A DNA stretch of 64,000 nt, taken from the NCBI GenBank assembly GCA_050084985.1, contig JBITNC010000001.1:163308001-163372000 (forward strand), written 5' to 3'. This document shows positions 1,418 to 55,300 of the stretch, piece after piece (within the stretch, counting starts at the first letter, position 1; every line of letters starts with the position of its first letter). The translations under genes and the position numbers were made by a program. Under the pieces are notes generated by a model. It searched no databases. It saw only the letters and a program-made list of their open reading frames with translations, and was not told the DNA's origin. Source of the stretch: Nageia nagi (Eukaryota; Plantae; Pinophyta).

Positions 1418-4400
1418 CAAAGTTGTCAAACTCAGACTTGGCGCAGACTCACCGAGACCCACTTGGATTCAGGATTCGGGAAGAAAATCGGTTGGACTCG
1501 GAAAAAATCAGCAAAATGAAAAAAATACATATATTTTCATTGAAAACATATTTTTTTCAACAATAACATCAACATTATACAATCTACAATATACACAATT
1601 ACAAATGGCGTATAGGAAGTGGCATATGTTTATATTTATCAAAATGTTAAAACTTAAAAGTTAAAACTTCAGTGTTCACAATACAAATTACAAAATGTGC
1701 CTACAAATCTATGATGGCTACAAAATAAAAAAGCTGCAGCGCACAATCTAATTAATAAATCTATCATGGCTGAAAACATCAATTCTTTGCTGTTCTTTTC
1801 TCCTTTGACCTAGCATAAGATACAAGCTCGTTTTGTGCCTGAGATATGGAATTGGATGCCACTTCCCCTTGTTGTGCCCTTTGCTCTTCTTACCCCCTTG
1901 CTGCCATCTCCTTTGCTAGATTTTCAAGATCATCAACAAGAATATTGGGAATATTAGGATCTTGTGTGTGTAACTCTATAGGCTGATCCTTATCATCTAA
2001 AAACTCATCTTCATCCCCTGAAGGCTGATCCTCTCCCTCTAAAGGCTGATCATCTACGATTCATTCATTGGATGGATCAATGGCATTAAGTTCAATGGCC
2101 TCGTAATCTATACCTGCAATGTTTGCATCAAGTTCAATATCAATTTCTTAAATTTGTTTTACAATTTAAAAGAGTTGTATACCTCATAATGTCCTCATAA
2201 TTTAGATTCTAGATTTTATACCTGCAATCTTTTTATGGATGAGGTGTAGATTGTAGTGAACAAACACAAGATCATTTAATTTTTCTTGTGTTAATCTTTT
2301 TCTCTTCTTGGAGTGAATGTTCTCAAACATATTCCAATTACGCTCACAACCATAAGCATTGCATGGCTGGGATAATATACGGATTGCAAAATTTGCAAGT
2401 TCGATGTAATTGACCCAAAATCCTCCCATCATAAATTTGAAAAATTCCAATAAAAATATATTTAAATTTTAGAAATTAATAAATCACAAGTTCATATGTA
2501 AAAAGTTGATACGAAGATTAAAAGTTTAAAACTTTAAAGTTTAATGTTTTAATTTTAAATTTAAATAACTTAAGTGGTAGCAATGTATCCATTGCTTTGG
2601 CACACTCAACAGAACTGAAAAGGATGCCATTGGCACTTTTATATGCTTGCATCTCATTCTGTATTGCTAAGCAAATGTTTGGATCAGCCACCAAACTGTG
2701 AAAAGCAATCTTCATTCTTGATTGTACCTGATAATCCCTACATACTTTTCCAAACCAAAATTTGGGATTAAGATAGTAAGCCGTTGCATGAAAAGGGCTA
2801 TGAAGTTGGTGATCCCAATGATGATCAATGATGTACCACAAGGGTGTGTATTTGGTCTTCTCCTTGCCATAATGTTTAGCAATTGCCTGTTTGGCCCTTT
2901 CCATGTCCTCAAACAAATAACCCATGGATGGTTTTTCTCCATCAGCAAGATGGAGAACTCTCACCAAAGGCTCTACTATTTGGAAAAAATAAACATTTAA
3001 ATTCAATATAAAGTTTCAAGTTTCAGCTTTAAAAATCTGAAGTTAAAGCTTAATTTTGCAAATTTTACCTTGATGGCCTCCTCCATGGCAATCCAAAGGG
3101 CTCCTCAAATATGATTTCGTAGACCCTCTTTCATTCGGCCATGGCTTTGAACTTAGCTCCTCTTTCGGTGCGCCACTGATCACCAACAAACATCTGCTTC
3201 AATGACCCCTAAATATCAAATGAAGTTAGTTAATTCGATCACAAATCAACAATTAAAAATAAATAAGAATGATCATGTTTATTTAATAATTATTAATCAT
3301 TAACCTATGCGTCGAAGAGACTTTGCAATGTAATAAAACTCGTGGCAAATCGTGTAACACCAGGTCGTGCTATCTCCCTACCACTAGTGTATTCCTTCAT
3401 AAGATGCAACACCCATGAATGATTGTAAATAAATTTGAGCACTTGCTTTGCCTTTTCTATAATCTCCATCACCAAAGTCAATTTGCCAATGTCCTCCAGC
3501 AGCAAATCAAGACAATGGGCTGCACATGGGGTCCATTTAAGTGTCTTGTATCTCTGCTTCAAAATCCTTCTTGCTCTCTTGTAGGCTGAAGCATTTTCTA
3601 TGATGATTTGGACAGCATTTTCAACCCCCACCTCATCCACTATGTTACCCAACAAAACTGCAAGGTGTACTCCTTTCTTCATATATCCAGATGCATCTAT
3701 AGATTTCAAGAACACAATGCCATCATGTGAAGCAACCAAGAAATTAATCAATGCCCTACCCCTACCATCTTCCCAACCATTTGACATTATCGTGCAACGT
3801 GATGTCCGCCAAGTCTCACAATGCTTATCAAACAACGTTTGAATGCCTTGCACAACCTCTTTAAGTAGAGGACCCCTCAAATCATGATATGAAGGCGGCT
3901 TAAATCCTGGTCCGCATGCTGCAATGGCCTCTACCATACTCTTCCAGTATGGAGGCCTAGCCGCATTGAATGAGATGTCTGAAAAAAACCAGAATGCAGC
4001 TATCACCTTCCTGGCTGCCCTATGTTTCTCATTCCATGTGGGCATACCATGCAATGTGGGTTGTGACCTTGGAGTGGAACGTGTAGGAAAAAAACCTCTA
4101 GGGTTTGCATATGTGCTACTTGTCGCTCCAATGGGGCTTTCCATAGCCTCTTCATGTTTCCTTTTCAGTTCCTTCTCCTATCAAAAATTAGTGACAGCTG
4201 CATTACACTCATTCATAACCTCAATGGAAACATTTGGGCATGGTCTAACTTCTTTCTTCAAAATCCTGGCTAACTGATGTTTGAGGCGGTTTATGCCTCT
4301 AGTCATGTCCATGCCACAAAAGATGCATATCAAGTTCCCTGCTCTTTTTCCTTCTTTTGCATATTTTCATGCAAAGTCTTTCTTCCCTTCAGGTATCATT

Positions 4401-24849: not shown

Positions 24850-27800
24850 CTCCCTTAAGGGAAACTTCACCAACCCAATAACATCCCTAAGCTTATAGAA
24901 CTAAGCTTGAGGAAGGGGCTTAGTGAAAAAATTAGAAGAGTTCAAGGTAGATGGATAATACTCTAGGTGTATGATACCATCAAGAACCTTCTTATCAATA
25001 AAATGGGCCTAGATTTCCACATGTTTTGTTATTTTATAGAATACAAAATTCTTAACCAAAGAAATAGCTGATTGATTATCTAAAGAAATAAAAGATGAGC
25101 CAACTTGGTCATACCCAATTTCTTTCAGAATATGCCTTAGTCAAATAGCTTCCTGAGTTGCAATAGACATGGTACAGTATCTAGCTTTTGTGGTGGAAAG
25201 AAAAATAGTAGGTTGCTTCTTGGAAGTCCAAGAGATAGCACTTGAACCAATGCTAAAACACATGTAGAGGTTGATTTCCTATCATCTCTATCTCCCCTAT
25301 AGTTAGAATCAGAGAATCCAAAAAGAACAAATGAGGGTAACTTGAAAAATTTGAAATGCACTCTTTACATTAAGTTAAAAAACTTTCCATCCTTGAGCTA
25401 CAAAAAGAGTACAAAAATTTCTAATAGTGGACATCTTTTCTATAGGAACAAAAGTTTCCTCATAATCAGCATCGTATTTCTAAGAAAAACCTTTGGTTAC
25501 TAACCTTGCCTTGTATTTCTCAATATCTTCAAATGAATTGAACTTGAACTTGTAGATCCACTTATTGCCAATCACATTTTTCTCATTAGGATAAGGAACC
25601 AAATCCCAAGTTTTATTTTTTATAAGCACCTCATATTCCACTTTCATGGATTTCATACAACGCTCGTGCTTTGAATCTTCTTTGAAGGATGAAGGCTCAT
25701 GCTTGTTGTTAATCTTGTTAAATAAGGATTTGTTCAAGGTCATGCTCCTTGTTACCCTTTGAGTTGAAGAGTTTTATTCCTGAAGTGACTTGTCTATATC
25801 AATATCCAACTAGCTAGGAGTAACTAATGAGTCATCTGGATCATCAACATCCTCATTAAAAGCAAATTCTTTAGGAAGTTCATTGAACTTTACATCCCTT
25901 GAAATGAGCATTACTTTATAGGATGGAGTGTAGATCTTGTAGCCTCTATGCTAACTTTCATAACCCATAAAGATGCACTTTTCATCTCTTTTGTCTACCA
26001 TTTTCCTTTTCTCAAAAATAATTTAGGAGAATGCTTCACAAGCAAACACCCTAAGGTGAGAAATGTTAGGTTTTCTTCTTGAAAATGCCTCAAAAGGAGT
26101 TTTACCTTGAATGATTTTTATGGGACACCTATTTAAGGTGTAAATATTAGTGCTCATAGCTTCATCGTAGAAGAAACTAGAAAGATTACCCAGCATGCAT
26201 CTAGCCATATTCATAATTGTCATGTTTTTCCTTTTGAAAACATTATTCTGCTAAGGAGTGTATGGAATTGTAAACTAACTTTTGATTCCATACTTAGCAT
26301 AATAAACATTGAACTCATTGCTATTATATTCTCCCCCATTATCTAATCTTAACATCTTGATTTTAAAGTTAGTTTGATTTTCAACTAAGGCCTTAAAATT
26401 CTTGAAACTCTCAAAGGTTTGATCCTTGTGCTCAAGTAGATACCCAAAGGTCATCCTACTAAAGTAATTAATGAAGGTCAAAATGTAAGATGCCCTTCCA
26501 AGTGACTTAGTCTAAAATGGACACATCAAATCTAAATGCACAAGTTGAAGAGGTTGAGATGCTCTTATTGTCTTATCTTTTTCAAACTTTTGCCTATGCA
26601 TCATGCTGAGGATGCACTTCACACATAGACCAATTGAAGGTGAAATAGAAGGGAAACCTTCCAAAAGTTCTTAATATTTAATGACTTGAATATTCTTATG
26701 GTTAAGGTGCCCTAAACATTGGTGCCAAAGATTTTCTCTAGAACATACGCTTGTAGCAAGACACATCTTTGATGGAACTTGATCCGCAATGTAGAGATCA
26801 TCTTTCACTAACCCTTTAACCAAAGTGGCAAGTCCTTTCTTCATGCACCAAGATTGAGATTTGAACTCAAACAAGTACCCTTTCTTAGAAACTTGGATCA
26901 TAGAGACAAGGTTTATTCTAAGCTTAAGAACATAGAGCACATTATCAATAACCTTCCTATGAATCAACACACTTCTAATTCTTTGGACTTCAAGGATAGA
27001 GTTATCACCTATCACGACCACATCTTTTTTATACTTATGAAAGTTCTCAAAATTTCCCTTTCAAAACATAAGTGATTAGTGTAACCAAAGTCAACAATCC
27101 AATCAGACAAAAAAGTGCAAGACATGGAGTAGAGCACCATAGCAAAACCATCTTGAATATAGTTCTTTACATTTCCATTGGCTTTATTCTTTTCCTCTCT
27201 TTTCTTTTTGTAACAATCAACTTCTTTGTGACCTTGGATACCACAATAGTTACAATTACCATCAAAATTTTTCTTAGGATATGGATTGTTTGCTTTACCT
27301 TTTCCATTTCTTTGCTTGAAGTGGTTGTTGTTACCATTATTCCTATTGCTATTGTTGTTGTTCCTGTTGTTGCCATTATTTCTATAGCTGTTGTTACTTT
27401 TACCTCTTTTCTCAAACCTTTTGGAGGAAGAAGGATAAGATTTCTTTTTATGGTTTAACTTATTCTTGAAAGGAGTTTTAGTTGCTCCAAGAGCCAAGTT
27501 ATTATCCTTAGGAGAAGAAATTGACATCTTTTTATCAAGGGTTTTCTCATGCTTCAAAAGAAGCCTAGAAAGGTTCTCAAGGGAGAAGACTTCTTCTTCA
27601 TCACTAAGCCTAGTTTCCATAACCATCATAAAGTTTCCAAAATTTGAAGAATGATGAAGACCATGAACTTATCTTTGATCCAATTGCACTTACAAGCAAC
27701 AAATTGGCCCTTAGTTCAATGATTTTGTTCAAGTAGATGAAAAAATTTTCATCTTCCCCTTGATGAGATTGAAGCAACTTTTGGAGAATTGTAAACCTTC

Positions 27801-31501: not shown

Positions 31502-34500
31502 TCTCCACCCTCCCCAAAATTTCTTTCCCTCAAGCAATTCAATGTCGAATGTGTGAGAATATCTATTCCTTCCCATGTGGTATCTTCTTCTGGAAGATAT
31601 TTCCACTTAATCAAGTATTCTTGGAGGATTCTAGATCTCATTCTCCTTTCCTTGGTTTCTAATATCTTTTTAGGTACCAACATCAGCTTTCCCTCATCAT
31701 CACTTAGGGTGGTAATTCCTATGAGGGTGGTACTTGTATCCTAATGAGCTTCTTCAAACAAGAAATATGAAAAACATTATGAATTTTGCATGTGGTGGGT
31801 AGTTCTATATCATATGAAACCTCCCCTATCTTGCATAGTACCTTTTAAGGACCAAATAAATGTGGTCTCAACTTTTTGAAAACTTTCTTATTGAGTGTGG
31901 ACTATTAGTAGGTTTGTAGTCTTAGATACACCATATCTCCTTCTTCAAATACATGTTCAATTTTTCTTTGATTTGCATACCTATTTTTTGATTCTAGGCT
32001 ACCCTTATATTCTCCTTAAGAGACCTCATGACATCTCGAGTATCTTGTAGAAATTCTTTGGTCTTTCAAACTCTACTATAACAAAAAAGTATGTCAATAA
32101 GAGTAGGTGCCTCATACTCATATAGTGCAATGAAACAAGACATCTTGATGAATGAATGATAGGTGTAATTGTATCATTATTATCCAAAATGCAACCACTT
32201 CATGCATGCCTATTGCTATTCTAAAACATAGTTCCTAAAGTAACCCTCCAACCATTTCTTTATTATCTCTATTTTTCCATCCATATAAGGGTGGTAATTG
32301 GTACTAGAAGTCAAGTTTGTTCCACTGAGTTTGAAGAGCTCTTACAAGAATAAGCTCATGAATCTACTATCTCGATCACTTACTATTTATTTGGGAAGCC
32401 CATGAAGTCTAAATATTTCCTTGAATAATAGTTCAACCACTTGTATGATTATGTATGTAACTAAGATAATAAAGAAGTGTGCAAATGTAGTTAGCCTATA
32501 TACAACTACATAAATACAATATTTGCCTTGCATCTTGGGTAGCCTGATGATGAAATCCATGGAAATACTTTCCCATTTTTGCTCTGGAATGGATAGAGTT
32601 TGTAGTAAACCAATAGGGGTTTGTTACTACTATTTTGCTAGAAAATATCACATTACTTCACATGTTTTATAACATCTCTCTCTCAACATTTTATATGTTT
32701 TGTTGAATCCTTGATGTCCAACCATAGGAGTATCATGGAATGCTATGATAAGTTTTCCTTTCATAAGATAGATTATATTTTTGAAGAATATCAACCCCTC
32801 CTTGATCTTGAACCTATTATCATCCATGTTTCTATCCATAAGGCTAGAGGTGAGGGAATTATTTTCATATTCTTCCATGATTATGGCTTTCCAATCAACT
32901 TGAAGAGTGGTGATGGCATAAAAATATAGGTGGTGAGATAAAGCATCTATAACAATATTTTTTTTTCCCTTTGACATATTTTATCTCAAATTTATAGGAC
33001 TATAATATGGTCACCCACTTTTTTTGTCTTTCATTGAGCTTATTTTGGCCCAAAAGATACTTGAGACTGTTATGATCATATTCTACAATAAATTTACTGC
33101 ATACCAAGTACTACTTAAATTTAGCTAACACATGCATAATTACTAACATTTCTTTGTCATATATGTAAAACATTTTCTTGAAAAGAGTGAGATTCCTACT
33201 TTCATAGGAAATTGGCCTCCCTCTTTGCATTAAAATAACTCCAAATCGTACTCTTCATGCATTGCACACCATTGTCCAAGATAGGGAGAGGTTTGAAATA
33301 GATAGGCAAAGGAAGGAACATATGATATTTTTGAGCTTCTCAAAATATTTCTAAGATTCTTCTCCCCACACGAAGGCTTCCTTCTTAGTCAGTAAAATCT
33401 ATCAAAGGATACATAACTTGAGAGAATTTATTGATAAATATTCGATAATGATTGAAAAAACCCCAAAATACCCTTATATGTGTCAAGGAGGTAGGCGTGG
33501 GCCAGTTTTGAATTGCAACAATCTTCTGTTGATCCACTCACACACCTTCATGGTTGACCATATGCCACAAATACAAGATTTCCTTCATACCAAATTCAAA
33601 TTTAGATTTCTTAGTGAAGAATTATTATTTCTCCAAGATCTCCCACATGGTATCCAAGCGTTGCAAGTGATATTTCCATGTATGGCTATATATGAGAATA
33701 TAATTAAAAAATACGAACACATAATCCCTCATATGAATCCTAAAGATCTATTTCATGGCTGACTGGAATATTGCTAGTGCATTGGTCAAACTAAAGGGCA
33801 TCACTAAAAATTCAAAGTGGTCATAGTGACACTTGAAAGCCTTTTTTGGGATGTCACTTTCTCTCATATGGATATGATGGTATCCTAATCTCAGATCTAT
33901 CTTGGAAAAATATTGGGCACCATGGAGTTCATATAGCAATTCGTATACCCTTGGAATTGGGTAATGATTTTTAATAGTCTTATTGTTGAGAATATTGTAA
34001 TCAATGCAAATTCGTAATGTGCCATCCTTATTCTTAAATAACACTATAGAGGTCATAAAAGGGGTAGAGCTTGGCCTGATGAATCCCATGTTGAGGAGTT
34101 CCTTGATAGTCTTTTCAATATCATTTTTGTATATATTATGATACCTATATGGGGTGAACATGATTAGTTTTATGTCAGCCTCCAATTCAATCATATGCTC
34201 AAAATACCTATTTGGTGGTAATTATTTAGGCATAATTTTGAATACAACTTCATGTTTTTCTAGAATGGATTGAATCTTAGGGTGGTAGGAGTGGTATTGT
34301 TGAGAAGAATATGTGGGCATGCTTTTGACCATATGAAACATCACTCTCCACTCATAGTCATTGCTACTCATAATCCTCTCCATATTATGGGCTGTTACCA
34401 CTTGGGGTGGTTGAATTTCCATCCTCCTTAATGAATATTTCTTTCCCTTGCCATATGGATTTAGATCTAATCACCTCCTTTCTTTTTAGAAAGTTTGCTT

Positions 34501-41879: not shown

Positions 41880-44800
41880 AAGCTAGGAAAGAGAACACAA
41901 AGGGAGATTAAATCATTAATGGGAAGCTCTTCATTGACATTCTAAAGGTTATAAAAGGAATTCCAAATAGCATTAATAGAAAAATACAAGCTCAAGATAT
42001 CTTGAACAAGAGATAGTAGCCATAAAACTCTAGAATTCTAAAATTTAAAGATCTAAGTGTTTGAATGATTATGTGTTAGAATGATTATCACCATATTATG
42101 GATACTTGAAAGAGGAGAACCAACTATTGTGCCTAATAATTTGAACTCTTTAATAAGCTCAATGATCTAAGTTAGGCTTGACCATTATAATATTGTTTCG
42201 TATAATAGTTTAGTTATTCCATGATGAATTTCCTACTTCATATATTATAGATTGCACTTGTAGACACATAAAATATACATATTTCCCTAACTCATAACAT
42301 TTAACATTGATCAAAATTGATGTTAAAACCTTTATTTTCCAATGTTCAAGGTTAGTTTCCTTTACTAGCACATTTTAATGTGATAAGGCATGCTAAGTAA
42401 TTAGGAAACATCTCCAAGTATTAGAGGTTATAACCTATTACCCTTTAACCAACCACTCCACACATTTTGAAAAGTCAAAAAGAGATCACATCTTGCTTAC
42501 TTAACCTTGTATTTCATTCTTGTGCCTCACCATACTTGGTGACTCACCCATCCACCTCACCATGGGGATTTAAGGCCTTTGCCTCTACCAAAAAAGTCTA
42601 ATTGGATTTGAATGCTCTTTGTACCTCCCATAACTTCTCCTAACCATCCCAAATTAGGTTTAGGGTCTCCTTGGCCATCACTATTATAATTCAATAAATA
42701 GAGATCTATATTTTCCTCTTACTTTTAAAGCATTCTTATGCTTAAAAATTCATTGTAGATCACTATTTTTCACAATTTTTTTCTCATAGGTATTTTTGTA
42801 TAGGTTTAATCTCACCCAATCCAAGCATTTAACTAACCCAATTAAAATTTATTCCATGGAAATCCAACCAACTCATTTTTCATTCATCAAAATAAGATAG
42901 AAGGAGGAGGCCAATAATATGTGAACAAAAGGTTAAATAACTACCATATTGAACTAGGAAAACTAAAACATACCAACTCAAAAGAACCTTAGAGCATATT
43001 TTAATGATTTTGAATTTTGATTCTACTTGTGAGTTGAGCCACCATTTTTTTCTTGTATGGAACCAATGTATCCATTTTTGCATGGATATAAATTGTACTT
43101 CTATATCCTCAAGATAAATTCAAACTAATCAAAGATAGGTGTATTAGTTATATTTACTCATTTCATGGTTTTTGACTTTATGCTTTGAGTTAGTTCAAGC
43201 CTATTTAACTATGGAATTTGACCACAACATGAAGTTTAATCATTTTGGGGTATAGATAAACTCCTAATATCTCCTTTTAATATTTCTTTTAGGTGCTTAT
43301 AGGATTAGAAAAACCCCCATAATAGTCATATATTAAGCCCATCAATTTTGAGGTCATTTGTGAAAAAATGCTAAGGTTTTGATATGTTGTACTAACTTAG
43401 ATGATGAGTTATTTATAGGTGAATATTTTGGAGATCATAGTGGGAAAATATCAATGGATATATCCTTATATTAACTACTAGAATAATCTCAACCACATAA
43501 GTATGCTCTAAATGAGATCTTTAAAACTATGAATTTACAAGCTCATGACCTTAATTTATTTGCTAATTTTTTAGCAATGTCCAAACATGTACATCCCCTT
43601 CCATAACATTTTATGATCATGAAATAAGAGCATAAAAGATTATTAATATCTTGGCTTGTGTATGCTCTCCTCTAAAGCCATACAATGACCATAGGGATAA
43701 AAAATCCTTTATCTTTCATTAACTAGTTTTGATCATTTCCAAAAATATAAAGTTTATTTTGTTAAATCTCAAACAAAATCTTGTTTGTATTGTTAATTAC
43801 ACATACAAAAAAAAATTGGGTTTTATTTTCTCATAAAGAAATATGTAAGATAAGGGTTATTTATTGACCATAATTCATATACATTTGAAAAACTTACCCA
43901 TAACATAATTTGGGCCTAACATACCTAAAGCATATCAAGGATGCCCTAACCTTTAATTGGAACTTACCATAATTAGCCATTATTCGTTCACCACATAATG
44001 CACTAGAAACATTCCATCATCAACCACATAATATAATGTAAAGATTCATCTAGGGATATTAGTTGGATGTATCATTATGAAGTAATATAATATGACTAGG
44101 GGTATGGTCCCAAGCATCCTTACTTAGTGTCCTAAAATATTGGAACAAGCATTATTGTTAAACCCTTTGTTATTATGAGTTTTGTATGGTATCACACACC
44201 CATCCTAGAAATACTTGTCCTTCACATTAAAGTAGAATTTACTAGATATGAATTAAAAATTTAGTGTGAAACCTATTTGGAAAAAATTGAATTCATTAGA
44301 GTTTTAAATTTATGATAATCTTGATCTTTAGTATAAAACATGTAGTCATTTTTATTTGATTATACAATCTATAATCAACTATATATTTCTATTCATATAC
44401 AAACTTTCATAAATAATACCAAAGTTTTATCTACTATATGATATTGAATTGAACATAGACCAATCCAATCATGGAGCCTCAACATTATCCATACCACAAA
44501 CACCCCTAAACCTATCCCACTTCAACTAGCCTAACCTAATCCTCTTAAGAAAAATACCCCCACAACATATTTTAATGACATATCCAAGCTCCCAATCATG
44601 CATATCCTCATGTCAACCATATTCCTCTCAAAGTCCCCAAATATAATCATGTTCACTCACATATTATTTCAATCCACCACAATCCTAATATCCAAATGCT
44701 TAACCATATATAAGTTCATATCAACCATATTCCTCTTAATATCCTTAAACTTAACTAAGTACATCCACATCTTATTCCACTCCACCATAAGCCTCATATA

Positions 44801-45978
44801 TGGCCTCCCAATCATACTCATTATCTTATCAAATCTATTCCTATCAAAATCCTCTATCTTTATCATATCCATCCATAACCAATCTCATCCCATTGCAAAC
44901 CTCATCCCTTTCCTAATCACTCCAAGTTTATGAAGACCCATAAATACAATAAATTTATTAAACCATACAATCCAATTTACCTTAAATATCATATCTCAGT
45001 GCCATTCCATTATGATTATATTCTTCACACCATATAAATTACCCTTGCTAAACCCCTCATGTACAACCATAGCCATCACTTTTTCAAGTATAACAAATCA
45101 TACCATCCACATCCTCTTCCACTCTTAAAAACATACATCTTTCTCAATCACCTCCAACATACCAAGATCTAGTATTGATTTTAAAATAAGCTAGACAACT
45201 CAAATAAAAACTAATACCTTCCTTTAGTCAAGATGATTTGTAACCATTCCTTTATCAGGGTTACCAATATTTCTAATAAGTTATTGAAATCTCACCCATA
45301 ATTACACCATATGACCCTAAATTTGAAATAATTTTAAAGGATAACCATGTTCCCCTTTTTAAATACATTACAAAGATTTCTCAATTCCTTGCCAATCAAA
45401 GGTTTGTGCAAGGTCTGTCAAGAGCTCATGATAAATCATCCACATAATGAAACATCCTTAAAGGTCAATATGTAATGGTATCCAAAGATTATGAGAAATA
45501 AAATCATTCCCCATCAACCTCATGCCTCCCTACTTAGGTACCTACCATATTAATCACATCAGCTTCCATCCCTACTATACAATCAATGACTCCATATCCC
45601 TCTCTCATCACTCCTCTCCCCAAATATAACCATAAATCTCCCTCCTCTAATAATATTTCACCTCTAATTAAATAACCCACTCCTCCTTTTCCTAACTCCA
45701 TAGAGGGGCATCACCTACCTACACCTCCCATCAAATATGCAATCGTCTCTCTTCTTTACCCCTCAAAGTACCCCATCCTCTTTCTCTTCCACTCATAGAG
45801 AACCATCATCCCATTCATCTTCCTCCATATATGAACATCATCACTATACTCCCTTACCCCCTTTATATAACATTATTCTCTCACTCTAACCATAGAATAA
45901 CTCCAACCCATCCACCCTCTTCCTAAAAAGAAACTCATCCTATGAACCATTACTTTGAAGTGGGATATTATCAATAAC
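41880..45978 (-). mobile_element. Highly degraded L1-type LINE sequence
   Basis: Minus-strand remnants AKKLANKLRS (LANRL-like, ~43560) and HIIGLLL (YLGLPL-like, ~42910) in the order expected for L1 RT; strong purine skew on minus strand. Confidence 0.55.
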
Positions 45979-46479
45979 CACTAGACCAAAAATGGACTTT
46001 GGGGACGGGCAATTTGAGGTAGTTTTATTGCAATGATTTTTAACCACCCTAATATTTCATTTTAGTTGTAGTTTCTAAGGGGTAGGTTTTACTCACCCTA
46101 AAAGAACTAGATGAGGTGGCTAAACACTACCTCTTCATGAAAACAACAAATAAAAATAAAAAAGGGTATGCGAGGGAAAGTTTTCAAACATTTGAGATAA
46201 TTTTTAGTTGAGGGGTTGAAAAGGAGAGGGGCATTTGTGTATTTGGTGATATGAGAGAGGAAAGGGGAGATTGGATGAGAGGATACATGGTGATACCAAA
46301 TGAGAGGATACCTAGTGAGACCAGACAATGGGAAATGTGTTTTCCTAGGAGGTGCAAGCAAGTATTTCAATCCTTGACCCTACAAACTTGAAATATTATT
46401 TTATATTCTATATATATGTTCATGATTTGTATTTTTTGCATTATTTTAGAAAATTGATGAATTTTGCAAACGTTTTAAA

Positions 46480-48220
46480 CCATGAAACTACATTTACATC
46501 ATGCATTTTATCAAACTTATCCTAAGTCTTGTGTATTCTTCCACAAGTTTCATGTGTTTATTTTTTTAGAAAACCTATTTTGTGTATCGCACAATCATTA
46601 GATACCATGAAACTATGTTTTATTTATGAATCATGTTAAATAAATCCCAAGTCTTATTTTATTCTTCCACATGTTTCATGTATCTATGAACCTTGTTTAG
46701 AAAACCCATTTTGTGTATCGTATAATCATTGTAGACTATGAAACTTTGTTCATGTTATGCATCTTGTCAAACAAATCAACAACTTTTGATTTACAAGCAT
46801 CAAGTTGATGCATCCACATACCTAATTTAGGGTTTATGGGTATTTTGGAAATGAAGTTAAAAGCTCCCATATCCTACAAAAACCACAACATTTGATTTAT
46901 GAGCACCAAGTAGACACATCCATATACCTAATTAAGGATTTATAGGTATTTTGGAAATGAAGTTAAAAGCTTCCTCAAGATAGCTTTCTCAAATCACAAC
47001 ATTTGATTTTCAAGCACCAAGTAGACACATGCATGCACCTAACTCAAGGTTTATGGGTATTTTGGTAGTGAAGTTCAAAGCTCCCTCAAGATAGCTTGGA
47101 TGAACCACAACATTTGATTTACAAGAATCGAGTAGCATGCACACAACCAATTTAGGATTTATGCGTATTTTGATAATGAAGTTCAAAGGCCCCTCAAGAT
47201 AGCCTACACAACCAAGAAGGTTAATAATGCATGTATAATGATTAATCCTATGATTGCAAGATATGCACAAAAATGAAAAACTTGTAGAGATTGTTAAGAA
47301 AATGCAATTGTCAATTGTAAAACTAGCTACATGATGAAACACTATACTTTAAGAAAGTATCAAAAACTAGTATCAAAGTGGTAATTTAGGAAAAATAAAC
47401 TTATAATACTTAACAACTATTCAACCTAGAAATTTAAATGCTATGTTATATTACCTCCATAATAAGCACAATAAGATATAAAGGTTATATGTCTCTCCCT
47501 CATGAAACTGTGTATGCATCATTCATCTTGTTAAACAATTCTCAAGCCTTGTGTATTCTTTCAAATTTCACATACATGCCCATAAGTGCATTCACAACCA
47601 CAACATTCAATGGAAATCCATTTTCAGCTACTCTTTGATGAATGTACATACCTTCTTCTAGAGCTCCCATTGTGACACATGCTGAAATATGATACATCTT
47701 AGGAATAATGCAATAAGAGTAACTCATGCTATTAAAGTATTTTCAGCCCTCATCCACTAGACCTACATGGTTGCATGTAAATAGAACACATATACATGTT
47801 TATATATGTAAGTAAAACACATATAAAGGTTTCTCATGATAGTTTTGTTCTTTCCTAAGAGACTTTTTTATTTTTCACCAAAAAGGGTTCTTAGTAAAGT
47901 AAAAAATATAGCTTGTAATACCTTGAAAGATATTGACACTGTACTTGCATCATGCATCTTGTTAAACAATTCTTGGGTATTGTGTTTTTTTCCAACTTAT
48001 CACTTTTGGATTGGTTTTTGACACTTGGAAATTTTTTGGGTTGAACAACTGCTTTCCTTCTCCAAGCCAATTTTTGGATCATATGGTACCATATTTAAAT
48101 AGATTCATATAATATCATGCATCTTTTTTATCTAGGAATTCAAAACCATAATATTCAATTTACAAAGCACCATGTAGACACATCCACATACATAATTTAG
48201 GGTTTATGGGTATTTTGGCA
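46480..48220 (-). pseudogene. Scrambled PLS/E-class PPR gene fragments (mostly minus strand)
   Basis: CGRIHK..FDKMHDVNVVSW; ACVTMGALEEGMYIHQRVAENGFPLNVVVVNALMGMYVKFERIHKA; CVLFTCNHVGLVDEG*KYFNSMS; HYTCIINLLGCVGYLEGPLNFIIK; CMCLLGA. Confidence 0.88.
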
Positions 48221-48734
48221 CTTGAGCTCAATTATGATGTTGGCAATGTCCTCCTAAAGAATGGCCTAATGGAACACATACACATGTTCATATATGTAAG
48301 TAGAATATATACAAATGTTTCTCATGCTATTAAAGTTTTATTCTTTGTAGGATATATACAATGTTTCTCAAGCTATTAAAGCACATAATATATGGCCTCC
48401 CTAAGCATGGTATAATGGAACTAACCAATCATCATTATATATATATATATAAATAAAATGAAAGATAAAGGCATGTTCATGATCAAGTGCATCATATCAT
48501 ATAAAATTATCCACTAACATATGGTATGAAATGATCTGATTACATCATATTGAATGATACTACTATACCATATGATATGAAATTATTCAAATATGCTCTA
48601 CTGTTCTAATTATTTCTCAAATAAGTCAAATATTATATATAGTACTACTACCACAACATTTGATTTAGAACCACTAAGAAGGCACAGAAAAACATCTAAG
48701 AAACACTTTTTGAAAAATTGAATTGCAAAATAAA

Positions 48735-51600
48735 ACTTGATAGACATGTATACAAAATATGGAAGATACATGATGTAGAAACATTTTCATGGACTGCAAT
48801 GTGGAATATGTTTGATGCAAACAAAGTTTCATATCATGTGCCATAATTTATTTGTATGAATATTTTGATACATGCTAAAAATGAAGGAACCCACAACATG
48901 TTTCATTATTTTCATCTCATCATTTTGTATATAGAATAGGATATCCACTTGGGAACCACATATTTTTTCTATGTTTGGTTAAGTATTACAAACATATTAT
49001 TTCCAACTTACCACTTTTAGATCATTTAGATCATCTATGTTTGGTTAAGTATTACAATTTAGGCAATGAAGGAGCCCACAACATGTTTCATTATTTTTGG
49101 GCACTTAAAATATTTTCATCATTTCGAGTTTTTAGAGCTAAGGAGTTGGAGGAGAGAGGTGCATTTAGATTATTTCATACCATACATATAGTGAACTTAA
49201 CATAGTTTCATATCTTATTATGTACTTAGATAATTTCACATCATATATATGGTACACTTGACATAGTTTCATATCTTATCTGTGCATATCTTGTGATCAT
49301 TATTGGAGGAGAAAGGGGAATTTGGTGTATTGGTGAGACCAAAGAGATTAGGAGAGACCAGATGTGAGAAGACATGGTGATACTATATGAGACATGGTAT
49401 AAATTATTTTGCTTCATATATGTATTTTTCTATAGGGAAAAATCATTTCATGTTATTATGATACAATTGCAATTGCCTCATCATATTGCAATCCCTACAG
49501 TTTTAAGCATCTAGGTTGGTTGTGTTGTAATATTATGAACAATACTGAAGCATAATGGTGATATATCTTTTGAGATCTTATAAATGTAGCTAGCCCTAAA
49601 TTTTCTAATTCATGAGGAAAGACATACAACCTTTATATCTTGTTGTTCTTTTTGTGGAGGTAAGCAACATAGAATATCATATATGATAATGTAGATGGAA
49701 TTATTAATAGATAGCATCGATTAACAATTCTATATGTATCAATATCATAGTTATCATAGTTATTTTTCACAAATATATGCTTATAATCATGTAATTTATT
49801 TTTATAAATTACAAGTGCAAAGAGAGCACCAAGTATGATATTATTCATAACTCGAAATGCCCAGTAACTTTCCAAGTGCTTGATGAGTCATTATACATGC
49901 ATTGTTGAAATTTTTGGTCATGTAGGCTATCTTGAGGAAGTTTTGAACATTATATATAATGAAATTGGCTCAATTGATGTCATATGTTTTATTTTGATAA
50001 GCAGCATAGCATTTAAATTTTTGGTTGAACAATTTCTAAGTATTGCAAGCACATTTTTGCCAACTTACCACGTTTGGACTAGTTTTGACACTTACTTAAA
50101 GTATAATGTTTCATTATGGGTGCAATATAATAATAATCAATCATCATATTAAAGGGTTTAAGGGAATATTTATTTTAGATATGAATTGCACATCCTCCAA
50201 TCATTGCCTTACGTGAGATTATCTAGGAACTTTATGTTGCTTTCCTTCTCTAAGCTAGTTTTACACATGAAAATTGCATCTACTTAAAAGCCTCTATAGC
50301 CTTTCATTTTTTGCATATCCTGCAATCGTGGGATTAATCATTATATATGAATTTTTGAACTTCTTATACATATAGACTATCTTGAGGAGATTTGAACTTT
50401 ATCTTCTGCAATGATTGCATGATACACACAAAATGGATGTTCTAAAAATTAAAGGCCCATAGACACATGAAATAATTCTTTGGCCTTGTGTATTGTTTCA
50501 CATTTTTTATACATGCCTATCAGGGTAGTCACAAGAATAATATGCATGATGCAAACATAGTTTCATGGTATACTATGATTGCAATATTCATGGGATTTCA
50601 AAAAGAATGTATAAAAATTCAAAGCACCAATTGCCTCTAAGTGCCAAAATACCCATAAATCCTGAATTGGGTGTGTGGAGTATCATAATTATTTTACAAA
50701 TAAATTATTACATGTGATATGGAATGATTTAAATACACCATATAATGTGATATGAAATTATTTAAATACACCAAATGCCTCTCCTCTTCAACCCCTCAAT
50801 TTTAAAAAATCAAAATGATAAAAATGGGTGTTTTAAAAATTAAGGATCTATAAACACATGAACTAATTCTTGGGCCTTATGTATTGTTTCACATTTTGCA
50901 TATATGTGATATGAAATGATTTAAATACACCATATGATCCAAATATTATCTTGGATAAGGAAAGAAACTATTCAACATGTGATATGAAATGATTTAAATA
51001 CACCATATGATCCAAAAACTCAAAATGATAAAAACATTCCAAGTTCTTGCCTAAGTTGGAAAAACACATGATGATAATACATAACCAAACACAAAAAAAA
51101 AGTGGTTCCCAAGTGGTTCATTAGATTATAGTTTAAGGGCATCCTTATTGTATCCATGAATTGCATTTCCTTCAACTATTACAATCTATGAGATTGTGTC
51201 TGCATCATACATCATCCATATTTTATATTCATGTCTATTAGCTTTTATGTTCCATCTCATTTATTTTAAAAAGTGCTACTTGGGTTTGTGGATGTTTCTA
51301 CTTGGTGTTTGCAAATTGAAATATTGTGGTAGTAGTATAGAGCATATTTGAATCATTTTATCAATAGTACTTGATCATAATTGTGGCATTCTTGATCATT
51401 TAAGCATAATTGTAGAGCATATTTGAATATTTTTGAGCTTCTTTAAAAAAATGTGTTTGCATCATGCATCTTATCAAATAATTCCTAGGCCTTGCATCAT
51501 ATGTTTATATCTTGCAATCATTGTAGATAATGAAATTGTGTTTACATCATGCATCTTCTCAAACTATCCTCAACCCTTGCATCATTCATATTCTTAAAAG
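48735..51600. pseudogene. Further dispersed PPR fragments on both strands
   Basis: Plus: IDMYTKYGR..HDVETFSW (~48740), SHYTCIVEIFGHVGYLEEVLNII (49886), HDANIVSWYTMIA (~50545), KIPINPELGVW (~50647). Minus: FDKMHDAN/FEKMHDVN-like pieces at 51455-51580. Confidence 0.8.
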
Positions 51601-51829
51601 TCCACAATTTCCTATCATATGGTGGACTTGGATCATTTCATATCATATGTTTGAAGCATCCAGGTTGGTTTTGTGGTAACATAATAGTGATACATGTATT
51701 GAGAGCTTCTAATTCATGATGATTTGAACAAGTTATTATGGGGTAAAGATATCTTATTATTCAAGTAAGACAACATAGCTTTTGAATTTTTGGGTTGAAT
51801 AGTTGCAAAGTATTACACACATATATTAA

Positions 51830-51851
51830 TATATATATACACCCACATTCC

Positions 51852-51882
<31 letters not shown>

Positions 51883-51922
51883 GTGTGTGTGTGTGTGGGT
51901 GTATGTACATATATATATATAT
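51830..51922. repeat. Compound (CA)n(TA)n(TG)n microsatellite forming a palindrome
   Basis: ..CCCACACACAC..ACATATATATATATGTGTGTGT..GTGGG.. is self-complementary. Confidence 0.9.
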
Positions 51923-52394
51923 TAATGATGATTGGTTAGTTCCATTAGGTCATCCTTCAAGAGTCCAAGGCCAACATCATAATTGGGCTCACTATGATTG
52001 AGCTCAAGTGCCTTGGGTAACTAAGGAAGGTGTAGCTTGAAATCATTCTTCCATTTGGAAGAATGCTTCTAGGCTAGCACTATTTTTTAAAATATATGAT
52101 AACTTTGTGCCAATTTTTAACCATCACCTACACCTATAAAGCAACAACTTAAATTGCCACCTTGAAAAAATGAGGTGGGTTTAAGTGATGTTATAGCTGC
52201 TCGCATTGTTTAATATAGTGGTAGTTTATACCCACTACTATATGATATTAGAAGGTAATTGTAGGTGATATATATCAATGATTTTTAATTGCTATCATAA
52301 AAGGGGGACTTTTGGTTGCAGGTGGAAAAGTGCCAGTGAATATGATAAGTAGCAATTTAAAACTACCCCCAATAGCCCTTTTTATCTAGTGAAC

Positions 52395-55300
52395 TTACAA
52401 ATTTCCCTTTATTAAAACATCCACTAACTAATATCCCCTTCACTAAAGGGATTGATCATCCTATCTATGATTTTCCCACTAAAAATCATTGTTAATTATC
52501 CAACCTTTCTCCTACAAAAGAAATTCATTCCATTAATCCTCCCCTTAACCAAGTAAATTACACTAATTGCATATACTTTGATAAACCCTTTATCAACATG
52601 ATCAACATCCATAACCAACATTATCTATCATACATGAATCTCAACCATCATCCCAATATATGAAAATCCATGATGATTAATTAAGACCACCTCTCACATC
52701 AAAGTTTCCTACTTCTTATATGGATACACCCTCAAAACCCAACACTATCCATATCCATCTCTTCATAGAGCCATATTTTCAATACTTAAATGTCTTTTCA
52801 AACCCACTTTTTGTAGACTCCTCTCCATACAATACCTATTCATAAAATGCACACCAATATTCAAACAAATACAAATCACCCTATCTAAAAATAGAACATA
52901 ATATTTATCCATACCATCATACACATCATTTTAAAACCTATCATGTTGTGACCTATAATTATGACACCTATTCTAATCCCATCCTAATTTCCAAACCCAC
53001 CCATTACCTCTCCTTTTCAAGTGACCTATAATATCACATGAATAATTACCCATCCTTGTTAATGGAATAATTACATTATATCCTTTTTGAAACAACTATT
53101 ATATCAACATTATCATCATCTATCCTTACTAGGGTACCTACCATGCAATAACATCATCACCCATACCTATTTGGGGACTAATGATACTAACCACCTCCTC
53201 TCTTCTGTCTAAACTTCCTCCTTCCTCTTTCTCTAATTCATTATTATATTCGAATCCTTCTTCTAGGACCTCCAATCCTTTTACTCATCCATCTTACCTT
53301 ATAATTTTTTCTTCTTCATTCACTTCATCTTTTAATCATTCAATTCCTTCATCCACTCCTCCTTCCAAGTATATCCTTTATAATTCCTCTCCTAACATTC
53401 TTCTTATCCTACATCTCCCCATCATGGGACTTGATGGGGAATAGAAATGGACTCATTTTAGCATATAAAATCCCATTAAAAAACCACCTAGGGATACTTT
53501 AGTAAATGATAATACATTTTTTATATATGTAATTAATCTAAATATTTATAAGATACTATATTTTGTTACTAGTTAATAATTTCATGTTTTAGAGACTTTA
53601 TATTACTAATATTTGTTATAATGAAAGGCATTTGCAATACAGATTCTTCTAGCACTTCTCTTAAAGACCAAGGCCACATGAAAAACCTAATTTTGGCTTA
53701 TGTTAAGAGAATGAAAATATAATATTTTATGCTAAAGTATTTTAGAGAGAATTCATTCTCTCTATTTCACAGGTGTATGGAATCTTGTATCTCCATATTT
53801 CACATGTTGTCCATAAATGGAGCCTTCTCAACTCACAAAAAATGTGGACTCTATTTGTGAATGGATTTAGTGCCATAATATGAAATAAGAGAAGAATATC
53901 TCTCACACATTCCAATCAAGAGTTCCAAAGAAAGTCATAATTTCTCCATGATCTTTGCAACAAGGAATTTGAATTAAAGAAGATGATGTAGTAGAAGATA
54001 AGGAGGAGAACTAGGCATATTCTTGGGATGTATCTTTCCTTTATTTGTAAGATACAAAGTGGTTGGACTTGGAGAATCATTTTGTTTGGATCTTCAATAG
54101 TAAATACTAAGGCCTTGTGGGAAATATTTGAAGATTATTCACAACCAACTTTGTAAGCATTGTATGGATTGTATAGTTGTGTTGTAGAATCTAGGTTATG
54201 CCAACAATAATGGGCTATTAGAGTTTAGTTACAACCATAGGATTATATAAAATCCTTGTGATTAGAAAAAAAGGTGTGTGTAAGGATAAATATTTATAAA
54301 GCAATGTTATTCAAGTCCTACTATGAGAAAAATACGAATCAATAAAGAATAAATTTTCTCAAGATTTTGAGTTCTACTTGTAGGTGTTTTGCTAATTCAA
54401 GTTTTGCCTCCTTCAATTTGTAGAGTCAGCCTTGCATTTATTTATTATTTTTTTAGTTCATATTTATGAAAATAGCTTGTATTATGTTCCATAATTTATC
54501 ATTGTAAATACATTATTACCCATATTTGTATAATTTATCCATCATTATTTCCATTAATATTATGTTTTATTAAGGCCTTATTGCAATTGCTATGTTTATA
54601 TATCCTTTCCTTCAATTTTCTTAGTATTTATTTCCTTTTCAAGAAATTTATAATTTCTAGTAGATAAACACATAATGGAGTACAATTTGCCCATGTATAG
54701 TCATAGGAAACCAAGCTTATATTGAGAAAATTAAATGGTGGATTGAAAACCCATCAAAACCTCCTGCTCTCTTCAATCTCCCTTAAATCTTTTATCCCCC
54801 AGTTCTTCCCTTTTCCTTTATTCCTATTGTAATAATCCCCCTTAACCACTTCTAATCCTTCCTCTCTGAATCTCAACATGTATTTTAATCCCCCCTCTAC
54901 TGATCATCCTCTTCCCTTACATCCTTTTCCCATCAAGGCCCCCTACTAACATCTCATCATTTCATTCATAAGTGTTCTATTCTATGTATTCTAATACTAC
55001 ATCTCCCAACCAATCTACCAATTATTACTTTAATCCTTCCTCTCCTTATCACAAAATACCCTTCAATACTCCCTTTTATAAACATTATTATTCCACTCTG
55101 CTCCTTCACTCCCACATCTTCCAACTAATCCAATAATCATTCATTTACTTCTTCTTCCTTCTAGAGAATATACTCTATTTTTCATTTTCCTATTGTAGCA
55201 TATCCTCTATCCATTACTCTAATCATCCTTTTACATCTTCATCACCTTACACAATAACCTTTACCAATTCTTCCTTTGTATAACCAAGATGTATCTTCAC

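Follow-up and report, generated by a model that had tools for sequence, protein, structure and literature searches.

A 6.4-kb CACTA transposon in Nageia nagi carrying tandemly repeated pieces of pentatricopeptide repeat coding sequence

Element Boundaries and Termini

The element analyzed here spans positions 45979–52391 (6413 bp, + strand) of a 64-kb stretch of the Nageia nagi genome (contig JBITNC010000001.1, positions 163,308,001 to 163,372,000; hereafter the window, whose numbering is used throughout) and is a non-autonomous CACTA transposon bearing numerous pieces of pentatricopeptide repeat (PPR) coding sequence. By direct reading, its left end at 45979 begins with CACTAGACC... and its right end closes at 52391 with ...ATCTAGTG, placing CACTAGA from 45979 and TCTAGTG up to 52391. 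The trinucleotide AAC lies directly outside both ends (45976–45978 and 52392–52394) as an identical 3-bp target-site duplication (TSD). Alignment of the two ends yields a gapped inverted repeat of ~50 nt, comprising a left terminal inverted repeat (TIR; 45979–46033, + strand) of CACTAGACCAAAAATGGACTTTGGGG, 14 extra nucleotides, and GGTAGTTTTATTGC, and a right TIR (52340–52391, − strand) whose reverse complement reads CACTAGATAAAAAGGGCTATTGGGGGTAGTTTTAAATTGC.

As a chance model for the termini, CACTA..TAGTG pairs with a 3-bp duplication were scored in first-order Markov simulations of the window. With termini of 60 nt, the gapped inverted-repeat score of the element (19.25) was equaled in none of 200 simulations, the highest simulated score being 17. 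With termini of 30 nt, an equal score arose in 3 of 60 simulated windows, indicating that a short inverted repeat is by itself weak evidence. CACTA..TAGTG pairs with a 3-bp repeat number 23 in the window. The whole 64 kb contains just two copies of the 10-mer GGTAGTTTTA; they form an inverted pair, one copy (+) being 40 nt in from the left end and the other (−) 25 nt in from the right end. Two other subterminal motifs, CAATGATTTTTA and ATGAGGTGG, are each present at both ends in the same orientation. The ends thus share a few short motifs, with no dense array of a single one apparent. Self-comparison of the 64-kb window found no further copies of the termini or flanks. Together with the related loci described below, this confirmed the stretch 45979–52391 as a real transposon with ends defined to the base.

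Coding Capacity

The longest open reading frame (ORF) in the element encodes 110 amino acids (a.a.; 47010–47342). A Pfam scan covering 31 of its 33 ORFs of at least 40 a.a. revealed no transposase domain, and returned weak sub-threshold PPR matches along with a few other sub-threshold matches that we take as chance. Nor does the element hold an ordered, continuous PLS-PPR reading frame, its PPR pieces being interrupted by stop codons, disordered, and distributed over both strands; the element is not a functional PPR gene. Among the related loci, four have ORFs of at least 150 a.a. (L003, L016, L019, and L020); those of L003 and L020 were scanned and showed only copia-type domains, with no CACTA-type DDE transposase (Transposase_21/Tnp2).

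PPR-Derived Pieces Inside the Element

Single ORFs matched PPR domains only below threshold in Pfam because the pieces are short. Their PPR origin was instead shown by a library-wide HMMER search and by tblastn of the 150 best PLS-class PPR proteins (E ≤ 0.1), with the reversed window as a control. A 61-a.a. ORF (47542–47727, − strand) matched 2508 proteins in a library of 1.84 billion, with a best E-value of 3e-48 and several repeat units in each protein. The four top-matching proteins that were scanned all contain PPR-repeat domains, including P0007 (PPR, E, E+, and DYW) and P0008 (PPR and a partial E motif). Used as a query in a protein homology search, the 110-a.a. ORF retrieved only two short ORFs (P0001 and P0002). 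By tblastn, the 150 proteins gave 1272 high-scoring segment pairs (HSPs) against the window and two against the reversed window, and all except four single weak ones fell within 46450–51563.

In total, 14 in-frame PPR pieces were delineated (11 on the minus strand and 3 on the plus strand), amounting to ~2.5 kb or ~39% of the element, most of them with stop codons. Measured against P0007, their coverage in the window ends by approximately residue 711, early in the E1 motif, and no DYW domain was seen in the window or in the related loci. Three types of piece recur: a motif-to-motif junction (..A..LFDKM..NVVSW..MI), a larger PLS fragment (47461–47943), and the L2-S2-E1 region (..HYTC..LLG..GYLE.AL.F..K.PI.P....W..LLGAC...NV).

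The pieces nearest the left end are arranged in tandem. A 131-bp tandem repeat of 2.1 units (46511–46777, − strand), identified with Tandem Repeats Finder and tblastn, reads ..LFDKM..NVVSW..MI, the junction between consecutive PPR motifs, and is present in 13 distinct loci. It adjoins a 111-bp array of 4.0 units (46771–47211, − strand; Tandem Repeats Finder) that encodes the end of S2 and the start of E1 (..GYLEGALNF..KIPINP.LG....LLGACKSNV..) and corresponds to P0007 residues 645–704. Within the 110-a.a. ORF lies a piece running from L2 through S2 to the start of E1 (..HYTCIINLLGCVGYLEGPLNF..; 47112–47339, − strand), which matches residues 431–475 of P0095 (53% identity, E 5e-9) and residues 645–689 of P0007 (51%). 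The largest PLS-repeat fragment (..CNHVGLVDEG.KYF..; ..GALEEGMYIHQRVAENGF.LNVVVVNALMGMYVKFERIHKA.ELFNKM..; 47461–47943, − strand) drew 984 HSPs from all 150 PPR proteins, with a best E-value of 3e-14.

A 451-bp segment (47244–47694, − strand) is missing from many other copies, and its removal puts L2-S2-E1 in frame. In this joined form, a single in-frame HSP extends over residues 612–689 of P0007 (54% identity, E 2e-24). Given that the joint 47243→47695 occurs in contigs of four out of four sequencing runs and restores the frame, the segment was either gained here or lost elsewhere, through recombination between PPR motifs.

Further pieces lie toward the right. A weak S2/E1-like piece (48169–48309, − strand; E 0.024) is a direct copy of the 111-bp unit, with 83–88% nucleotide identity to 46789–46954, and an inverted copy of the S2 piece (..SHYTCIVEIFGHVGYLEEVLN..; 49841–50080, + strand; 38 HSPs) forms an inverted repeat with 47181–47247 at 81%. 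PLS-type pieces (..LIGMYKKCETIHKAKELF..) at 50407–50721 (− strand) received 96 HSPs from 58 proteins, and a piece on the opposite strand within the same stretch (..MHDANIVSWYTMIA..; 50536–50622, + strand) received seven, with a best E-value of 0.002. The series ends with a PPR P-motif-like piece (51063–51215, − strand; seven HSPs, best E 0.002) and a weak piece reading ..FEKMHDVNTIS..TMIA.. (51483–51563, − strand; one HSP, E 0.036) that has nucleotide homologues in 12 loci. With their stops and frameshifts, all of these pieces are decayed pseudogene sequence, which we take as inert and carried as passive cargo.

An earlier sequence-only reading of this DNA had described CACTA termini, an exact AAC TSD, no recognizable transposase, and disordered PLS/E-type PPR pieces on both strands, and in each of these respects it holds. 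It had also described recurring non-coding modules; the modules do recur, but some are PPR sequence themselves, as in the 65-nt D1 family, which reads ..LFDKM..NVVSW.

Related Loci and the Transposon Family

Scanning Joint Genome Institute (JGI) metagenome contigs with the 110-a.a. ORF retrieved 21 loci, or ~14 distinct loci after merging contigs assembled repeatedly across samples, with plant-type copia genes in their vicinity. The same left terminus is present in at least eight independent instances (L004, L006, L009 twice, L010, L014, L016, and L020), following the consensus CACTAGACCAAAAA[A/T]GG.CTTT.GGGG...AATTTGAGGT.GTTT or a close variant; the terminus in L013 is more degenerate and begins with CATTAG. 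The 12 nt outside each family terminus are all different and unlike the window flank, and the window flanks have no match among the 21 loci, which indicates that homology stops at the proposed end of the element.

A complete relative is present in L010 (1669–8065), where an element of 6397 bp has a right end of the window type at 1669 and is bordered by a TAC/TAC duplication, with one base changed in each CACTA pentamer. A right end of the same type is found in L016 (at 3338), and no other relatives of the right end occur among the fetched loci. L004 is colinear with the window from 45979 to 48034 at 80% identity, until its contig ends. Taking the loci together, nucleotide matches cover 97% of the element, the remainder being a 34-bp gap and the last 113 bp. 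Nine loci have contigs that extend as far as an end, and in these the PPR pieces co-occur with family ends. With other copies of the termini present as well, the refuting conditions set by the sequence-only reading came out in favor of a real transposon.

In three places (L016:11473–12100, L020:9954–10450, and L009:8203–8350), the DNA directly outside a family left terminus is itself the 111/131-bp PPR array of the family, showing that family members have inserted into one another's arrays, through nesting or target preference. L009 further contains two family left termini in the same orientation (4053 and 8202), 4.1 kb apart. According to a published proposal, DNA capture by Pack-CACTA elements starts from insertions arranged in this way, close together and in the same orientation (PMC6379663, PMC8903248).

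Origin of the PPR Cargo

The position of the PPR cargo is conserved across the family. In the window, the match to the PPR ORF ends 1031 bp from the left terminus; the corresponding distance is 1029–1078 bp in L004, L006, L010, and L016 but 936 bp in L009, and the orientation is always toward the left end (i.e., at ~1.03 kb with the same orientation in six loci). All 14 PPR pieces, each taken with 40 bp of context per side, have homologues at 69–87% nucleotide identity in 10–14 of the 14 distinct loci. The 111-bp array, with 4.0 units in the window, reaches 8 to 12 unit lengths in L006, L010, and L016. Across all loci, 40 distinct 111-bp units share the same boundaries (from the S2 end to the first half of E1) and are 80–93% identical (mean 87%) to one consensus, compared with a best amino-acid identity of 42–57% to the real PPR proteins tested.

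Other copies retain long colinear PPR remnants (218–303 a.a.). L018 is colinear with P0007 residues 471–687 (47% over 218 a.a., E 3e-57), the match in L014 spans residues 394–688, and that in L009 spans residues 495–770, into E2, with a separate hit to 734–775. With L016 (residues 649–736), L009 is the only locus to extend past early E1. Within the element in the window, composite blocks of PPR and non-PPR sequence have been duplicated in direct and inverted orientation at 72–90% identity (e.g., 47176–47506 vs. 50402–49609), and the apparent mosaic is explained by tandem and inverted duplication within the element. The sharing of the cargo across loci, its conserved position, and the similarity of its units indicate that it belongs to the whole family and derives most simply from one or a few old captures, in which the 3′ portion of a PLS-E gene was taken up.

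Abundance in Sequencing Runs

The contigs of four sequencing runs, labeled as four different organisms, were aligned to 45700–51699 at ≥80% identity. Between 18,991 and 72,442 contigs matched in each run, and in all four the two most heavily covered bins were 46771–47211 (the 111-bp array) and 47500–47699. Depth at the terminus was ~100-fold lower than at the arrays, and the reading of this as PPR modules lying outside the family was rejected, given that the termini are only 66–74% alike between copies and fall below the 80% threshold.

Between copies, the terminal 190 nt (45979–46170) are 66–74% identical and the internal PPR arrays (46771–47211) 75–87%. Such a conserved interior with variable ends is the reverse of the usual pattern, and might reflect homogenization of the arrays. 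In run X6, labeled as an air metagenome, 9% of the sampled words of the element were present, which suggests that the host, or a relative of it, releases large amounts of airborne material, for instance pollen.

Proposed History of the Element

Very probably, the element is a copy of an abundant, old, non-autonomous CACTA (En/Spm-type) family with an old, internally amplified PPR transduplicate. Under this reading, an ancestor of the family would have taken up the 3′ portion of a PPR gene of the PLS-E class, comprising PLS triplets and P2-L2-S2 into E1, with E2 kept in some copies. This cargo would have been placed ~1 kb inside the left end, with its own 3′ end toward that end. Two of its pieces, the 111-bp S2/E1 unit and the 131-bp unit, would then have become minisatellite-like tandem arrays, with other pieces duplicated and inverted into the right half of the element and segments added or removed by unequal recombination between PPR motifs. 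Subsequent transposition would have spread the family widely, accounting for the related modules seen in each of four sequenced relatives, on contigs that number in the tens of thousands. Lacking coding capacity, the element must depend for any mobility on the transposase of an autonomous relative; if still mobile, it would presumably move by cut-and-paste, with that transposase acting in trans and recognizing the CACTAGACCAAAAA... ends.

Several observations weigh against this history, or limit how far it can be carried. The related loci are metagenome contigs and the sequencing runs are coded, and neither in itself assigns the copies to Nageia nagi. The candidate element in L016 (3338–11472) has no matching duplication at its ends (ATA vs. 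AAG). No empty site was found, the flanks being unmatched in the 21 loci and 200 bp of the left flank having a depth of 0 to 1 in the runs, and no autonomous partner with these termini was present in the window or the scanned loci, leaving mobilization in trans as an expectation. Run depth is a sum over contigs and not a copy number, and the contrast in depth between termini and arrays is partly a threshold effect, following from the divergence of the termini noted above. Finally, the case for one capture rests on shared position, unit boundaries, and unit similarity and not on a donor phylogeny, and a few captures early in the history of the family may have taken the place of one.

Alternative Explanations

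The most radical alternative, that no transposon exists here and that a decayed cluster of PPR pseudogenes lies between chance CACTA/TAGTG pentamers and a chance 3-bp repeat, is almost certainly wrong. It could draw on the ties obtained with 30-nt termini and on the 23 comparable pairs in the window, but is contradicted by the 60-nt comparison, by the recurrence of the 45-nt terminus, with an identical starting base, in at least eight independent loci whose flanks are unrelated, by the second complete element in L010 with its own 3-bp duplication, and by the fact that all repeated and PPR-like sequence ends at the two element ends. The sequence-only reading had suggested instead that the CACTA family may repeatedly capture and shuffle one host gene family as a mobile library of PPR fragments; each element would then be assembled independently, from many different PPR genes. 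The presence of at least three kinds of PPR piece, disordered and on both strands, would suit such a library, as would the variation in internal arrangement between copies (the centers of the L010 and window elements align poorly) and the finding that maize Pack-CACTA elements often contain DNA of several loci (PMC8903248). The comparison between loci nevertheless argues strongly the other way: no piece is private to the window copy, the position and orientation of the cargo relative to the left end are conserved, and the units share boundaries and are far closer to one consensus than to any PPR protein tested. PPR and non-PPR sequence was also duplicated jointly, and a single contiguous portion of a PLS-E gene accounts for all pieces. 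The library proposal was accordingly not borne out, and we regard it as improbable.

A further proposal is compatible with an old, internally amplified transduplicate and would add to it, namely that the inverted PPR modules give rise to hairpin or antisense RNA and thereby to small RNAs that target PLS-PPR editing-factor genes in trans. In favor of this idea, small RNAs target PPR genes in Arabidopsis (TAS2, miR161/miR400), and many inverted module pairs (36–192 nt, 72–97% identity) link the left and right halves of the element. An antisense regulatory role was likewise proposed for a PPR fragment in a grapevine CACTA element by the authors who described it (PMC2528002). Against it, none of the listed runs containing element DNA is recorded as RNA, the arms are not only short and imperfect but also separated by kilobases, decay of the pieces is far advanced (their amino-acid identity to the tested PPR proteins does not exceed 57%), and the main expected effect of small RNAs from such a family would be silencing of its own members. 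We therefore give it very little credence. The same holds for its broadest form, in which the CACTA family made the S2/E1 minisatellite and spread it to thousands of sites in related plants, with small RNAs dampening PLS-PPR genes genome-wide; although a long shot, this would, if true, parallel the control of PPR genes by TAS2/miR161, with a transposon as the carrier. A search against Rfam matched no family, and gave only sub-threshold animal and plant microRNA hits at the palindromic (TA)n(CA)n/(TG)n(TA)n microsatellite at 51825–51926, which were rejected as low-complexity artifacts.

Comparison with Known Elements

The operational definition of Pack-CACTA elements (PMC8903248) combines TIRs and a TSD with no transposase match and a significant match to a coding gene, all of which were found here, and the assignment made in the sequence-only reading is upheld in this sense. 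With the Pack-CACTA and other Pack-TYPE elements described in Arabidopsis (Catoni et al. 2019, PMC6379663) and surveyed by Gisby and Catoni (2022, PMC8903248), the element shares its non-autonomous nature, CACTA ends, 3-bp TSD, and coding-derived interior. Described Pack-TYPE elements are mostly low-copy, however, with interiors less repeated than those of transposons generally (PMC8903248) and typically less repeated than their own ends, as a sign of recent capture, whereas the modules of the present element lie on 19,000–72,000 contigs per run and its arrays are the most covered part. In other words, the gene-derived interior is here the most repeated part, is family-wide, and has been turned into tandem arrays, with no fresh capture seen.

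One published case is the grapevine family Cactavine-5 (EnSpm-5_VV), an autonomous-type family of 21–25 kb in which two copies contain a PPR gene fragment (Benjak et al. 2008, PMC2528002). That fragment is single, consists of coding sequence and 3′ untranslated region, and lies antisense to the transposase (PMC2528002). By description, the two systems are alike in being CACTA elements with part of a PPR coding sequence; they differ in that the element described here is 6.4 kb in length, lacks a transposase, and belongs to a family of very many copies in which the PPR pieces have been amplified and rearranged. A literature search for a described high-copy CACTA family with PPR sequence yielded only this grapevine case, repeat databases lying outside that search. 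The Jozin CACTA elements of Chenopodium combine captured gene fragments with internal satellite arrays (Belyayev et al. 2022, PMC8978399), and thus resemble the present family in having host gene fragments and internal tandem arrays near one end. In Jozin, the 171-bp satellite was added separately from the gene fragments, whereas here the repeat unit is itself a gene fragment, derived from the PPR S2/E1 junction.

Intact PLS-E/DYW PPR genes, which encode organellar RNA-editing factors (e.g., P0007), share with the element the PLS triplets and L2-S2-E1 region at 40–57% amino-acid identity, in contrast to which the element has no intact frame, frequent stops and frameshifts, and scrambled pieces on both strands. 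Taken as a whole, the element is a fairly ordinary non-autonomous CACTA transposon, with the twist of a gene fragment serving as array unit in a very abundant family.

Implications

The existence of such an element changes little in itself, given that transposons with gene fragments are a familiar phenomenon and that a grapevine CACTA element with a PPR fragment has already been published. Of more practical importance, the family scatters very many PPR-like pseudo-fragments through the genome, and unless it is masked these will inflate PPR gene counts or corrupt gene models. It also illustrates clearly how a piece of coding sequence can turn into the repeat unit of a tandem array within a transposon, the number of units differing from copy to copy, and bears in this way on the origin of minisatellites and satellites from transposons. 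Any importance for the regulation of organellar RNA editing would depend on small-RNA data demonstrating that the family acts in trans on real PPR genes.

Surrounding Sequence and Other Features of the Window

Elsewhere in the window, an ORF at 2518–4144 (− strand) gives a strong match to DUF659 (E 3e-52), a domain characteristic of genes for hAT-related transposases, and is accompanied by a second ORF downstream. Retrotransposon remains are found at 26671–27629 (− strand), with a copia-type Pol beta-barrel and a gag-pre-integrase domain, and at 33748–34194 (− strand), with a reverse transcriptase (RVT_1) fragment.

Immediately around the element lies a G-poor (C/A/T-rich) domain of ~2.5 kb (44470–45978 and 52395–53440), with a GC skew of −0.3 to −0.54 and no match elsewhere in the window or in the fetched loci. 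It carries one exact copy of the subterminal 12-mer CAATGATTTTTA (52480–52491, − strand), and may be the arm of another element.

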